Part shown: piece after piece, positions 48,373 through 55,357 of the stretch
Layout: every line of letters starts with the position of its first letter
Position numbering within the stretch: position 1 is the stretch's first letter
Origin: Lepidodermella squamata
Taxonomy: Eukaryota; Animalia; Gastrotricha
DNA: 64,000 bases
Reading direction: 5' to 3'
NCBI GenBank assembly: GCA_047495785.1
Contig: JBLDXI010000032.1
Coordinates: forward strand, 868,001-932,000
Notes under the pieces: generated by a model
Databases searched by the model: none
What the model saw: only the letters and a program-made list of their open reading frames with translations
What the model was told of the DNA's origin: nothing
Program-made: the position numbers and the translations under genes

Positions 48373-49186
48373 CTGACCCTCGCAATTTATTTGGCATGGA
48401 TAGTTCATACCGTTCATTACAGTATACTATTAAATTTGAATATGATAAACAAAAATTATCAAAAATGATTAAACTGACACCTACACGCAATTTATCAGTA
48501 TATAAAACATGCGGCACCGCTTGAAAATCCTGATAAATTTGTAATTTCTGATAAAATATACGGCACCAAAGCTTCCCGCAGCAAAGTGTTATTTTTCTGC
48601 TTCCTTAATGATTTTAGCATGTACAACGTTGCTTCTGCGTTTCAGGAATTCAAGAATTCGCCATTTATCAAACCGGAAGTGGAAAAAAATCGGCCCGTAG
48701 GAATTCGCTTTATTTTTGGAAACACCTGAAATAACTGCGAGTATTAAGTATAAAAGATCAATATTTGAAGGGATAATTAAGCTCCAATAATTGGCAAGAT
48801 GATACAGTAATACCACTGGTCTCAAACGAGCAATAAGTAATCGCGTAGAAGTATAATCCATCAAATCAACATCGAATTAATTAAGGTAGATCGATCAGAA
48901 CTGAAAATCAGTTTTTTATAGTTGAAGAGAGAATTGAGTTTCGAAATGCGAACCAGGCTTGGACATCAAAACGTAACGCGTTGCCGCGCAAGGGAAAATA
49001 ACCAAGACCTTAGTTTAGAGGCAAATTTATAAACAAACAAATCGAATGAAATTTCAGCTATACAAAAACGACCGCAGTAGGTTAAAGTAGCGAGCGGCGG
49101 AAATCAGTGAAAAAACGGTAAAAAATCGGAAACATAATGTCTTCTCACACATTTTGAATATAGTCGCGAAATTTAGAAAAAACGTA

Positions 49187-49768
49187 GCATTATACTCCTG
49201 TTTTGCAGGTCAAAGGTCACACGTGCACACGTGATGAAAACGTGTGATCAAAACACTAAACTTTTAAGTTGTTGCTTGTTGTTAAGTTGGTGGGGGTTTC
49301 GTCATTTCGTCATTTCGTCAATTCGTCACTTTGAAAAACTTCCAAAAGACCGAAAAAACTTACAAAAAATAAAAAAAATGATATGAGCTGGAGTCGAACT
49401 ATCAACCTCTGGTTTCGAGTGCTAGTGCTGGAACCACTAAGCAAGCAAGTTGTCTTAAAATCGTGTGCATCGATCTTGTTGAAGTATGCTTTAACTGGGG
49501 CCTATATCAATTGATTCTAAGACGGGTCCCATGTGTCTCCTGTGTGGTTTAGTGGTTCAAGCTATAGCTCAGGAAACCAGAGGTTGATAGTTCGACTCCA
49601 GCTCACAACATTTTTTTTTATATTTTTTTTTCATGGTGACGAAATGACGAAATGACGAAACGACGAAACTACCACACTAGCAACAACCTAAAAGTTTAGT
49701 GTTTGGATCACACGTTTTGATCACGTGTGCACGTGTGACCTTTGACCCGCAAAACGGGAGTATAATGC
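49187..49768. mobile_element. 582-bp fold-back element with two divergent tRNA-like cassettes, flanked by a GTA direct repeat, inserted in the recombinase 3' end
   Basis: GCATTATACTCCTGTTTTGCAGGTCAAAGGTCACACGTGCACACGTGAT... (from 49187) mirrors ...ATCACGTGTGCACGTGTGACCTTTGACCCGCAAAACGGGAGTATAATGC (to 49768). Arms ~250 bp around a ~100-bp spacer. GTA at 49184-49186 and 49769-49771. Confidence 0.9.
49538..49619 (+). ncRNA. tRNA-derived Pol III-type cassette (A box, B box, T-run); inverted twin at ~49371-49445 on the minus strand
   Basis: A box TGGTTTAGTGG at 49545-49555 and B box GTTCGACTC at 49590-49598 (45-nt start-to-start spacing as in tRNA positions 8 and 53), then T9 at 49611-49619. Stems pair poorly, so this is not a functional tRNA. 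Confidence 0.6.
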
Positions 49769-51211
49769 GTAGGCATGTTCACTTGGGGCAATGTATTGCT
49801 CGTAGGTTGCAGAAGCCACGCCTTCCGAATGATGTAAAAACCTATCGATTACCAGCTGCATTGTTCCGGGTAAGCCTGGAATGTTTTGATGGCGAGACGT
49901 AGTTTGCATCATCCTTCGCTGCATCGAAAAATGAAATGCTGGGAGAGCTGGTCTTTCTTTGACCGGCATGGAACGAACGAAATCGTCCCAAAGTACACTC
50001 ACGTGATAGGACAGATGCTGAAACCGTGAGCCATCTTGACGGAGTAGAACGTATTTCGCGCTGGTCGCATCAGCCGGCTTTGGACGATACTTGTTCAGGT
50101 ATTCCTCGTATAGTGCCATCAGTTCCTCATCAAGAGTGACGTAGGGAAAGCACCGTTTGCCGTACTTCGTCTCCAACACGTGTATGGTAGTTGTTCCCGG
50201 GATTTCTGACTTCCGGTTCTCGTATTCTCGCATTGTCATGCCGATGATGCTAGTAGGACGACACCCGTTCAACGCATTCATTTTGACGGCGATTAGAGCG
50301 ATGCGATAAACGTAGGGAACAGATAGTCCAGCCTCTTCCAAGCCTGAAATCGAGTCTCGAATGAAATTGGCGTATTTTGGTGCGGTGAATATTGTAACTT
50401 GGTCGTTAGTTCGTTTATGTTTCAATTGGGCGCTTGCCAAAGACCGCTGTTTGTTCAGCATCAAAATTCGCGGATTCAGGCATTCCTTGACTATACTGTC
50501 ACATGCGGCACGCTCCTCGTCAGTCACTTCTCTCCGATTGCACAAAAATCCGTTCCTGTACATGAGTAGAAAGTCCCGTACAGCCGCCAACCTCATGTAA
50601 GAGGTGTGAGGTGAAACTTTAGTCACCTTTTTCCACCTGCTGGAAACGACATCGGAACTGGCGAAATAGTCGTACCACAACTCGTTATTAAAGACGTCGG
50701 ACATAGTTTTCATTCCAGCTAATTCAAGCGTCATTTTCAAATGAGAGGAACGCGAAGAAACCGTTCGACTGTTTCGTGGTTCTTGAAGCTGTTCAACCAT
50801 GTAATCAGGATCGCCGTACCTTTGCTTGAGCAACAACAATCTCTTCTCCTCCGATTTAGACGAGGAAAATGACTGTATAGATGTGCCAGATTGTTTTTGA
50901 CGTTTGCTAGAACTGCTATCTTTAGGGCGAAACTCCGGTGTTAGAACGGCTTCTACAGCAGGCCCTCGAGCAGAACGAGATCTTGAAGCACGCGTCGTCA
51001 TTGGAGAAACGACGGATTTCGGCACCACAGTTGGTTTAACGGATCGAGACCGTGATTTGCGGCTGGTTGATGCTTTTGGCGAGTCACACTTCTCCGAATT
51101 GTGAACGGAGGATGTTGAGACATCACGTGATGGCCGCGAATTTTCGTCGCTTCTCCCCGACAGCTGAAAATATCTTGAATCGTTAATTTCATCGAGTGAA
51201 TCACTCGGCAT
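49721..51211 (-). CDS. Tyrosine recombinase (lambda-integrase fold, Crypton-like), 496 aa, intronless ORF
   Basis: Catalytic residues in order: NALNGC-R-PTSIIGMT (R), IHVLET-K-YGK (K), FHFSMQ-R-RMMQT (HxxR equivalent), RFLH-H-SEGVASAT-Y (H/W and Y). Helical core-binding-like region upstream and an S/R-rich disordered N-terminus. Confidence 0.85.
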   Translation of the reverse strand: MPSDSLDEINDSRYFQLSGRSDENSRPSRDVSTSSVHNSEKCDSPKASTSRKSRSRSVKPTVVPKSVVSPMTTRASRSRSARGPAVEAVLTPEFRPKDSSSSKRQKQSGTSIQSFSSSKSEEKRLLLLKQRYGDPDYMVEQLQEPRNSRTVSSRSSHLKMTLELAGMKTMSDVFNNELWYDYFASSDVVSSRWKKVTKVSPHTSYMRLAAVRDFLLMYRNGFLCNRREVTDEERAACDSIVKECLNPRILMLNKQRSLASAQLKHKRTNDQVTIFTAPKYANFIRDSISGLEEAGLSVPYVYRIALIAVKMNALNGCRPTSIIGMTMREYENRKSEIPGTTTIHVLETKYGKRCFPYVTLDEELMALYEEYLNKYRPKPADATSAKYVLLRQDGSRFQHLSYHVSVLWDDFVRSMPVKERPALPAFHFSMQRRMMQTTSRHQNIPGLPGTMQLVIDRFLHHSEGVASATYEQYIAPSEHAYALYSRFAGQRSHVHT

Positions 51212-52762
51212 CTCCGCTGAATTTGATTCGCTGAGATCAAAGCTTTCTCCGAGTTGCTGTTAATCGAGTGCTCGTCATTTGAGTCGAGATGAGCAGGCGT
51301 TGAACACCGAACAGGATTATTCCCCTTTGAAAATTTCCAGTTTTAATTTACGCTTTAATCCGGTAAAATTTAGAAAATCTAATTTATTTTATGAAGAATT
51401 CGAAATTTACCTGTAACTGAACCTGATCCGCATCGGCAGCTGCTGCTACCACCAGAAATTGTGATCGAAGCTTGGCGTTCGAATCTTTCACTCGGATTCA
51501 CTCGGATTCACTCGCATTGGCAGAAACTACCATCTTTAGATGATGAGGCTAAGTCGTGATTTGAAGCTGTTTTGCACCGACAAATGCTGTCGTTTGCTGT
51601 CATAAATGAGCGATAATCAGCATGCCCCTGATAATTCGTTGAGTTGATGGCTTGCGATGGGATCGGAGCGAGTAAGATTTCAGCTTTAGCCAGTTCGAAA
51701 GCATTAGGACCATGAGCCTTAGCGCGAATGCAGTAATTCATTATGTGACGCTTGAGAATCTTGGACGAATATTTTCGATGGCAGAATACTCGCGAACCGC
51801 ATTTCTCTTTATTCGATTCCGTCGCTTATACGGGAGATGAGCCGCGAAACGACCATTGCTCGAACGACTGGGCTCTCGAGAATCGAATGGAGAAGAAGAA
51901 ATTTTCATTGATTAGCCGAAAAAAGTCGTATTTAAAATCTAAGGGGAAAAATAGTAATTATGAGCATAGCATTTTATTTCGAGATACCCTTGAGCTAAAA
52001 AAATGTTCCGATATACATAAAAACCAGTGGAACAATGTTCTACGCGGGCGGGAGAATCTCGAGATAAAAGAAACAAAGCATTAGTGATGGTTAAAAACGT
52101 GATATTGAGTAACAAGCGGTAGAGTTAAATGTTCAATTATTCGGGCTAATAATATTAAAAAACAGGGGCGACCGCATTCATTTAAATTTTGATTTAAATA
52201 AAAAACCTCATTTTAAATATTGGTCGTAGTGCAATCTCATTGGTAATGCCGCTTCTACAGGTCATTCAACATTCAAAGTTTGGCGGTTTTTCGATCGAGA
52301 ATTTGCGGAAAAAATAAGATCCAACCATTTTTACGACAAATTTCTAGTTAACATTCCGCCTTATTTAAATTAGAACCTAAGATGAGCCAATAATAGCTTC
52401 TGAATTTGCTCGTAAAATATCCCTAATTCGCTAATTATATTTTTCAGCTAAAAAAATAAGCTTTTTTAATTAGAGGCGCAATTTTTCGAATTTAAAAAAA
52501 ATTGCAAATCGATTCGTTGGCGCTGAAAAATTCCTGCTAGTCTCTCGCATAAAATAACGCAAACTTCCGTTCACCTTACTAGTGGTTAGTATTTGATACG
52601 AACAGAAAAGTTGAGAAGAATGACCAGGCCGATTCGATCAGTTTTATAAGGAAAATAAGACAAATTATTAGAAACTAATCATTTTCGTCTCCTGGCAGAA
52701 ACACGCTTCCCACAATTTCCACATCCCACACAGCTTTGTTGCTGTTCTTCAGGAATCTTGTC

Positions 52763-53777
52763 TCAATTCAAATCAGTCGATTCAGATGGGAAGTGAACAG
52801 TTTTGTTTTTCTTGAATGTTCTACGCACGGCCAATGAGAAAGTAGACCAGAAAAGGGCCACAACGTTGCCGAAGTAGTAGAAGCACATGAAAGTTTTCAG
52901 TCCGAAGGTGAGAAACAGAATAATATAACGTAAACTAATCGAGACTGTGTAATAATCGAGGTAAACATATGACAATATTTTCCCAAGCCAATATGAAACT
53001 ATCCGCGTGTAAAATAATTCCATGAGTAAGTTAATTACCACCGCTAGAAACCCGACCTGTGACTCCTTGTAAATCGCTAAAATAAGAAGTGCAACTTGAG
53101 GAATGTAGTGCGTAGCAGTAAAAACTGGTTCGAACTCGTAAAATGGCCAGAAATGGCACACCAGAAATTGAAAAAGACGAAATTTACTGAGATATTTGAA
53201 AATACCCGACGCAATTTGCGATGCTTTAGTTCCAGCAGACCGATAGGATTCAAGATCAAATAAGCTTTCAGATAGTGCGAAACTCGAAATATTTGTGGCT
53301 AAATAGGCGCATATAGGGCGAATTACGCTAAATGCTGTAGCCCAAGTTCTGATATTATCTTCTGGAAGCTCGAGAACGCAAGAAATCGAAGAGCAAGAAT
53401 TTTTCACGAGGCAACCTAGCATCTTGATAGACAACTCGTCCCAGACTACCGTCGAGAGAGGCCATTCGCAGATTTTTTCAGCTTAAAAAAATTGATATTT
53501 AGAATTTCAATCGAAATTTAAACACTCACCTGTCGAAGTGAAATTAGCTATGCATGAATTCGTACCGAATTTGTACGATTTGTAGTACTGCATACCAGTG
53601 ATCAGCTCGAACGTTTCCGGGGCTTGATTATTGGTGTGGTCAGACGTGTCCCTTTTTCTGATGACATGGTCGACAGCATCATCGTCAAGCTTGAACAGGT
53701 CGAGCAGATGAAACTCTTCGGCAGCAGGATCACGAGTGGCCAGCCATGGCGAACAGAAGCAACAATCCCGGCAACAT
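52763..53777 (-). CDS. Orphan multi-pass membrane protein, probably frameshifted near the signal peptide; exons ~53777-53530, 53482-52763
   Basis: Signal-like MLPGLLLLFAM is out of frame with the downstream DPAAEEFHLL...IRKRD...SCIANFTST|AEKICEWP reading, which splices into the 223-aa ORF with Cys-rich luminal part and ~5 hydrophobic helices. Confidence 0.55.
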
Positions 53778-54545: not shown

Positions 54546-55104
54546 CGCAGATAACAGTTATTATTTACGCCGGTCTGAATCAATAGCAACTGCGACGGAT
54601 ATTCTATTAATTACAGGAACAGAGTGTCTAAATAACAGGTGAACAATGCGGATGTGCAACGTTTTCTGACTTTTTGAAAATTTCCGACTCACCTGCTGTC
54701 ATGATAGGTGTACTTAGAGTCTCGTTATACCGCGTAATGATAGTGCGCGTGTCGGCCGAAGCGGCCTGCGCGCTTCCTCGGTGTTGCGTCTTTTGAGTAA
54801 TGAGACGTCTGTCTTTCGTGCGCGCTCAAGTCGCCGCCCGCCGCGCCGATTACGCGGACTTTTTCGCGCTTATACCGCTATCTGTGTTATTCAATACTTG
54901 ACCGGCCGCCGGGGGCCGCTGTTCAATGTGCGCCGCTGCTTTCGTGTGCTTATTAGCAAACCAATTGAATATTTCGGGAGTGAAAACATTAAAAAAAATG
55001 AATCAAAATTAACCGTAATTAATATACAATGTCTCAATTTTTATTGTTTCATTGACCCAATCAATAAATTCGAATTAAAAATAATTTCCGCGGCACATTG
55101 AGAG

Positions 55105-55146
55105 ATGCCGCAGAGGTGCCGCAGTGGTGCCGCAGTGGTGCCGCAC
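55105..55146 (+). repeat. Short tandem repeat, (GGTGCCGCAGT)-type unit x4
   Basis: GATGCCGCAGAGGTGCCGCAGTGGTGCCGCAGTGGTGCCGCA. Confidence 0.85.
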
Positions 55147-55357
55147 GGTTTATCAGACCACATTGAGATACGGCCTCAAGCCCCGGGTCGGAGGGGCCTT
55201 TTACTAACTTATCTTTTCTGCGTTCTTGCTTGCAGCATTTCACCCTAGTGCTCGATAAGATATAGAAAATAAACATCTAGATAAGCACCTGCTCTGTTCG
55301 CCCCGACAGTCTGTATTTTTGCTGTTTTGCGGTGCTCACAGTTTATGCTCGAGGAGA

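Follow-up and report, generated by a model that had tools for sequence, protein, structure and literature searches.

Is the palindrome that ends a tyrosine recombinase (YR) gene of the gastrotrich Lepidodermella squamata a switch worked by that enzyme, or a transposon that landed there? The locus lies in a 64,000-nucleotide stretch of the genome (GenBank assembly GCA_047495785.1, contig JBLDXI010000032.1, positions 868,001 to 932,000 of the forward strand), hereafter the window, whose own numbering is used throughout. A sequence-only reading had noticed that a fold-back element replaces the C-terminus of the recombinase, and had offered two explanations: insertion of a miniature inverted-repeat transposable element (MITE), or a palindrome that serves as the enzyme's own substrate and toggles its tail. 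We conclude that the locus very probably records a routine transposition, in which a young fold-back MITE entered the YR gene of another, decaying mobile element, and that it contains no built-in switch.

A fold-back insertion exchanges the recombinase C-terminus

The element is a near-perfect 580-bp palindrome (49188–49767) that adjoins the displaced tail of the YR gene. Its outer arms (49187–49279 and 49676–49768) are 93 nt each and 94% complementary; with the inner segments, the symmetry reaches ~250 nt per arm, and the loop measures ~108 nt. As single-stranded DNA, the palindrome folds at −209.6 kcal/mol, compared with −64.3 ± 5.7 kcal/mol for shuffled sequences (z = −25). Each arm contains four TTTCGTCA repeats, and the open reading frames (ORFs) inside this copy are merely 40–51 amino acids (aa) long and attributable to chance.

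Alignment of the flanks of family copies placed the true termini of the window copy at CATTATAC...GTATAATG. Because these sit one base inside the limits first drawn, the direct repeat around the element is the 5-bp CGTAG and not the 3-bp GTA initially proposed, which is its middle. The reconstructed empty site is identical whichever of the two repeats is assumed.

As read, the YR ORF ends in ...APSEHAY-ALYSRFAGQRSHVHT and a stop, the last residues being encoded by the right arm of the palindrome. Beyond the left arm, the minus-strand frame 49186–49145 reads YVFSKFRDYIQNV, again followed by a stop. ORF and minus-strand translations thus bore out the presence and coordinates of the fold-back, the frame arithmetic and both tails as given in the sequence-only reading. 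The insertion swaps the last 12 YR codons for 15 palindrome-encoded codons, and the displaced tail is still in frame. The intact C29 paralogue ends in ..SAPTDHAF-IFAKFNSFMRS and a stop, the C7, C60 and C43 copies (99.9% identical) end in ..SPQEHAE-IFLKFKEFLSS..., and a metagenomic relative has the tail ..SPKQHAQ-VFKVFQKFF... All align to the window's ..EHAY-VFSKFRDYIQNV plus stop, with the shared pattern ..HAx-[VI]F.KF.. at the displaced VFSKF. Because the tails of these relatives align without gaps, the 12 codons at 49148–49183 are the original C-terminus, and the empty-site reconstruction is exact. The junction lies 11 codons past the putative catalytic residue, a spacing upheld by the family alignment: Tyr470 is the sole Tyr of its segment that stays aligned across the wider YR family.

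The palindrome-encoded tail (49721–49768, minus strand) opens A-L-Y-S-R-F, shifted by one residue from the ancestral V-F-S-K-F and the paralogue I-F-A-K-F. This resemblance is probably due to chance, but might make the insertion less harmful.

The fold-back belongs to a young, dispersed family

Across the genome (121 Mb, 151 contigs, one assembly), the palindrome matches at least 16 full-length copies at 87–97% identity on different contigs, plus fragments. This genome lacks the nematode SL1 leader, and a nematode origin was accordingly rejected. Flank alignment of the copies defined the family termini as CATTATACTCC...GGAGTATAATG. The 33-nt terminal pattern CATTATACTCCYGTTTTGCAGGTCAAAGGTCAC occurs 50 times in the genome, compared with 0 for a control, and forms inverted pairs ~540–590 bp apart. 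Since the copies diverge from their consensus by just 1.2–7.2% (1.7% for the window copy), the family is young.

Target-site duplications (TSDs) were found at unrelated sites. A 2-bp direct repeat, its sequence varying (TT, AA, TG, TA, AT, GA, GT), borders 13 of the 16 independent copies; the remainder comprise one copy with a 3-bp repeat (ATG), the window copy with its 5-bp CGTAG and one diverged copy with none. Duplications of variable sequence point to staggered cleavage followed by repair, and the variation in their length is unusual. The family therefore combines the features by which MITEs are recognized (shared terminal inverted repeats (TIRs), variable-sequence TSDs and multiple, dispersed, non-coding copies), and the proposal that a MITE hit the gene stands. 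Like MITEs and fold-backs such as the Drosophila Foldback-like, Stowaway and Tourist elements, the palindrome is small and non-coding, with long TIRs and subterminal arrays of short repeats; the likeness extends to dispersal in many copies, TSDs and frequent truncation of genes. Unlike usual MITEs, it has TSDs of variable sequence that are mostly 2 bp long but exceptionally 3 or 5 bp, and both of its arms carry a tRNA-like segment.

These segments lie at 49380–49440 (minus strand) and 49545–49625 (plus strand) and contain TAGTGG.. and AGTTCGACTCC motifs. Each is followed by a T-run, and both face outward. The pair looks like a decayed RNA polymerase III (Pol III) cassette. ARAGORN detected no tRNA in the window palindrome or in a related fold-back, and an Rfam search of the palindrome likewise returned no tRNA. 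Its sole match, MIR5048, scored far below threshold (28.8 bits against 160), and we rejected this identity as a generic long-hairpin artefact.

Related fold-back families share the TTTCGTCA array and the first 9–19 nt of the terminus. A different fold-back of ~480 bp (L047:2851–3330, C73) has CACGTG-type ends and TTTCGTCR arrays, with a segment in each arm that carries a canonical GGTTCGAATCC T-loop motif; it is a sister family of the same architecture. Beside this fold-back cluster, at L047:2740–2799, a run of ~27 G faces a C-rich run, forming a G/C homopolymer palindrome.

The palindrome is independent of recombinase loci and keeps one orientation

When the YR and membrane proteins were compared by tblastn with all flanks of the other palindrome copies, the match was limited to the 15 palindrome-encoded residues. 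Searched by blastn with the palindrome, 93 kb of YR paralogue loci gave no match. Moreover, the ends and subterminal TTTCGTCA repeats of the palindrome are unlike the end repeats of the YR elements (GGTGCCGC).

Two indels, of 10 nt and 24 nt, distinguish the arms of the fold-back. In an alignment-based count over dispersed copies in the one assembly, all 13 independent full-length copies (13/13) have these indels on the same side of the spacer, so that spacer inversion was not seen; one duplicated pair of fold-backs does not have the 24-nt block. In the consensus the two arms are identical over their first ~79 nt, so that inversion of the spacer would leave the YR tail unchanged, in line with the near-identical tail that had been predicted for it. 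An invertible or excisable switch should be seen in both orientations or states, at a locus dedicated to the recombinase, and the survey showed neither.

The locus does resemble the fim switch, the Hin/Gin systems and shufflons, in that an inverted repeat lies beside or within a recombinase gene. In contrast to those systems, the repeat in the window belongs to a mobile family present at dozens of loci, was seen in a single orientation and could invert without changing the product. The sequence-only reading had also described what would speak against a switch: a widespread MITE with 3-bp TSDs at unrelated sites, a DDE partner and no other YR copy carrying the palindrome. We found the widespread family, the TSDs at unrelated sites and no palindrome in any other YR copy; the TSDs are instead mostly 2 bp, and no DDE partner was found.

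The recombinase family has a predicted Cre/Xer fold

The genome encodes YR paralogues at 49–52% identity to the window protein. Neither the window YR nor the paralogues matched any Pfam family at E ≤ 1, PF00589 and DUF3504 included. A word-based protein search with the window YR gave no match, and nor did a three-sequence YR profile against the PDB. A profile search of 1.84 billion representative proteins returned just 19 relatives, all from ENA/Logan metagenome contigs, of which two match PF00589 below threshold (E ~ 1e-3). With the resulting 24-sequence family profile, XerA was matched at E = 2.7e-4, followed by weaker matches to Tn1549 Int and XerD. We modelled the C29 paralogue with AlphaFold2 (AF2) on the 24-sequence alignment, reaching a predicted local distance difference test (pLDDT) score of 90.3; an earlier run with a three-sequence alignment (pLDDT 52) was discarded. 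Foldseek searches with this model gave Cre, XerA, Tn1549 Int, XerH and TelA as top matches at a probability of 1.0, and also lambda Int and Flp. VIA-align yielded Z scores of 11–13 over ~270 residues to Cre, XerH, Tn1549 Int and lambda Int. On the strength of this model, the window ORF family is predicted to have the two-domain YR fold of the Cre/Xer/Int superfamily.

The window copy and its paralogues all have R318 (in CRPTS), K349, R433, H461 and Y470, as assigned by alignment pattern rather than by superposition. The His three residues ahead of the second catalytic Arg is not conserved in the window YR family. Up to residue 481, the window YR retains every position conserved among the paralogues.

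In Cre/Xer/Int enzymes, the helix after the catalytic Tyr contacts the partner subunit. The last helix of the C29 model spans residues 357–372 (..DHAF/IFAKFNSFMRS, the slash marking the junction), of which the first five or six precede the junction. The model and the Cre/Xer fold matches thus agree with the earlier placement of the junction in the C-terminal helix region of a Cre/Int-type enzyme. Every full-length relative has this helix (HAx[VI]F.KF, QAGxAxW, HMGAAxW), whose conservation spans 16 residues among relatives with ~20% identity. Helix N of Cre and the tails of XerC/D and lambda Int likewise form a last helix after the Tyr-bearing segment, and the swap in the window hits the equivalent helix. 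Compared with DNA-bound Cre, the structural alignments end at model residue 346, ahead of the Tyr segment, and in-trans packing of the helix, a Cre-type feature, is putative here. By analogy, we infer that the tail swap would harm assembly and lead to loss of function.

A distant YR branch at ~30% identity (L030, L032–L034, L036; C29, C1, C31, C17) appears to be split by an intron. In this branch, Gln replaces the His before the catalytic Tyr (ALVQSEPTGE.VYT), and because of this substitution the branch may be catalytically altered.

The host element is single-copy and looks decayed

Three sister YR elements (C7:1514301–1519428, C60 and C43; L049/L025, L050/L026, L051/L027) are 99.9% identical and ~5.1 kb long. 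One end reads ACTCACTCGACACC... and continues into CTCGACACC repeats; the other, ...GGTGTCGAGTGAGTTATATATTGATA (GGTGTCGAGTGAGT), gives a 14-nt inverted match. The flanks differ between the copies, which have no TSD and no palindrome inside. Each carries a membrane-protein gene upstream of a 725-aa zinc-finger–YR fusion ORF, which in C43 is short of 111 codons through an in-frame deletion. These elements have moved recently.

The gene layout in the window is that of the sister elements, with a membrane-protein gene upstream of the zinc finger and the YR (Table 1). The window copy is unique in the genome and, being single-copy, shows no trace of recent activity. A GGTGCCGC-type array at 55101–55145 is mirrored by GCGGCACC motifs at 48510–48568, which suggests a host element of ~6.6 kb, with putative ends, enclosing the palindrome. 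None of these end motifs resembles those of the palindrome.

Two further lesions mark the host element. In the zinc-finger remnant, the reading frame shifts near 51795 (51780–51800), between ..NGRFAAHLPYKRRNRIKRN and VFCHRKYSSKILKRHIMNYC... The shift separates the conserved blocks NGRF..RNRIKRN and VFC..KRHIMNYC. The membrane-protein ORF (52763–53434) stops at 52763–52765, inside the alignment, and its conserved Cys-rich tail continues in frame beyond the stop. Both lesions may be real decay, assembly errors being less likely, and the host element looks dead or decaying.

Table 1 Features of the recombinase locus in the window (a dot denotes no strand)
Feature	Position	Strand	Basis or remark
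Putative downstream host-element end: GCGGCACC/CGGCACC motifs and TCTGATAAA	48490–48570	.	Inverted relative to 55136–55157; putative
Displaced ancestral C-terminus (Y)VFSKFRDYIQNV and stop (49145–49147)	49145–49186	minus	Homology to paralogue tails
Left 5-bp TSD copy, CGTAG	49183–49187	.	
Fold-back (MITE-like) non-coding transposon copy	49188–49767	.	Structure, family, termini; 1.7% from consensus
Right 5-bp TSD copy, CGTAG	49768–49772	.	
Tyrosine recombinase ORF, 496 aa	49721–51211	minus	Residues 482–496 and stop (49721–49768) from palindrome right arm
Zinc-finger-type ORF remnant, upstream in host element	51508–51908	minus	tblastn with paralogues, three-frame translation
Host-element membrane-protein gene	52682–53434	minus	48% identity to gene beside C43 YR copy
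Small ORF, one hydrophobic segment	54228–54545	minus	Possible second cargo gene of host element, by position only
Putative upstream host-element end: AGAGGTGCCGC ×4 array, then GGTTTATCAGA	55089–55157	.	By analogy with CTCGACACC arrays of C7/C60/C43

Goodwin et al. are said to have described Cryptons, in 2003, as DNA transposons built around a tyrosine recombinase. The C7, C60 and C43 elements have this character: they are multi-copy YR DNA elements without reverse transcriptase or RNase H and without TSD. Sequence kinship to Cryptons was not found, with no match to DUF3504 or any other Pfam family at E ≤ 1. The host-element family shares with Cryptons the Cre/Xer-fold YR, the lack of a nearby reverse transcriptase, the multiple copies (its sisters) and the missing TSD. 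Unlike Cryptons, it has no PF00589/DUF3504 match and just 19 relatives in 1.84 billion proteins, and it carries a zinc-finger-type N-terminal ORF, membrane-protein genes, short inverted ends and arrays of 9–11-bp repeats. Cryptons have no TIRs and either fixed 4–6-bp terminal direct repeats or none, and animal Cryptons have been described without terminal repeats (Kojima & Jurka 2011, PMC3212892).

Search for the mobilising enzyme

Longer elements of 2.2–3.1 kb (C73; C33:407908–411034; C28:1627801–1628735) share the palindrome terminus, the TTTCGTCA arrays and a 2-bp TSD. The C73 element (L047:4030–6187) measures 2.16 kb, is flanked by a TA duplication and has a ~1.85-kb interior whose ORFs show no domain match; the sole domain signal in the interiors of the longer elements is one sub-threshold match to DUF7833. 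A decayed partner may be among these elements. Near the solo termini on C25, C30 and C11 lie just host-like ORFs and no transposase.

Two copies with interior coding sequence were rejected as partners. The C3 copy (L039:2870–5219) contains an internally deleted P-like element with TNP-like RNase H and GTP-binding domains; this is a nested insertion with its own ATAGACATAATATCAG inverted ends and an 8–9-bp TSD. The interior of the C36 copy is a nested reverse-transcriptase fragment of a long interspersed nuclear element (LINE).

At least 57 places in the genome match DDE_Tnp_4 (PIF/Harbinger-type), including sets of identical copies, and the genome thus hosts active cut-and-paste families with short TSDs. 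None of the places checked (at least 57) lies near a known palindrome terminus. Two-bp TSDs are typical of the Mirage (CMC) and the PIF/Harbinger-related ISL2EU groups, which are candidate sources of the enzyme.

An ordinary insertion accounts best for the locus

According to our preferred explanation, a young, non-autonomous 580-bp fold-back transposon inserted into the YR 3′ end of a single-copy Crypton-like element and duplicated CGTAG. The catalytic residues remain intact, and 12 of the ~16 conserved residues of the C-terminal helix are replaced by 15 arm-encoded residues ending at the stop in the arm. The palindrome would have been moved in trans by an enzyme making short staggered cuts (TSD usually 2 bp), probably a cut-and-paste (DDE-type) transposase encoded elsewhere. 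Because the host element is itself decaying, we read the event as the insertion of one transposable element into another, without a regulatory role. Several observations weigh against this explanation. No autonomous element with palindrome termini turned up among the longer elements and solo termini examined. TSD length is mixed (2, 3 and 5 bp), with the window copy as the outlier, and the zinc-finger frameshift and the membrane-gene stop could predate or postdate the insertion. Across its 496 codons the YR ORF is uninterrupted and retains every conserved catalytic position, so that a protein could still be made, and its new tail start, A-LYSRF, is similar to the old VFSKF.

The idea that the recombinase acts on the palindrome as its own substrate, and by excising, inserting or inverting it toggles the C-terminal tail as a regulatory switch, draws on the position of the junction in the post-Tyr, partner-contacting helix, on the exact restoration of the frame when the element and one repeat are removed, and on the likeness of LYSRF to VFSKF. 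Yet dozens of unrelated loci without a nearby YR carry the palindrome, and this dispersed, YR-independent distribution has already largely refuted the idea. The palindrome is absent from the other YR loci, every copy compared shows the same spacer orientation (and inversion would not alter the tail anyway), the end repeats of YR elements (GGTGCCGC) differ from those of the palindrome (TTTCGTCA), young YR elements make no TSD, and the host element has two further lesions. We regard such a switch as extremely improbable. It is unlikely, to a lesser degree, that the insertion was tolerated or exapted, the YR with its new tail being still expressed and active or partly active, and the new tail mimicking the start of the old helix. 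The intact 496-codon ORF, the conserved positions kept to residue 481 and the correspondence of A-L-Y-S-R-F to V-F-S-K-F fit this idea; however, mimicry of the 16-residue conserved helix is limited to its first third and is out of register by one residue, the element's partner ORFs are disrupted, the element is single-copy with no sign of recent activity, and a 580-nt hairpin in the mRNA would probably be destabilising.

Other possibilities concern the mover. The fold-backs could be non-autonomous elements of Crypton type, moved in trans by a YR of the genome, one of which reached a YR gene by chance. The search turned up no DDE partner, TSD length varies, and several YR-element families of the genome have short subterminal repeat arrays, a layout common to the palindrome. 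The flanking repeats, however, vary by copy, as expected from staggered cleavage and repair and not from recombination at a fixed core, and TSDs are absent from the young YR elements examined, whose ends are unrelated. Cryptons, moreover, are described without TIRs and with fixed 4–6-bp terminal direct repeats or none (PMC3212892). On balance this origin seems quite unlikely. If one of the unusual YRs of this genome did move the family, the landing in a YR tail could reflect an enzyme–substrate relationship and not chance. The tRNA-like Pol III-type modules in both arms, the 8-mer arrays, the atypical 2-, 3- and 5-bp duplications and the missing partner would accommodate such a link, but the variable duplications, the unrelated ends and the published features of Cryptons (PMC3212892) disfavour it, and we consider it very doubtful.

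Implications

As found, an ordinary MITE insertion is a minor event: one more that truncates a gene, here the recombinase of a decaying mobile element. A self-regulating recombinase is removed from the candidates at this locus, and a young fold-back family with unusual 2-bp duplications is documented. In addition, the locus presents a rare family of Cre-fold recombinases with a natural helix-swap allele at the C-terminus, next to which the ancestral tail survives; this allele could guide a test of whether assembly requires the helix.

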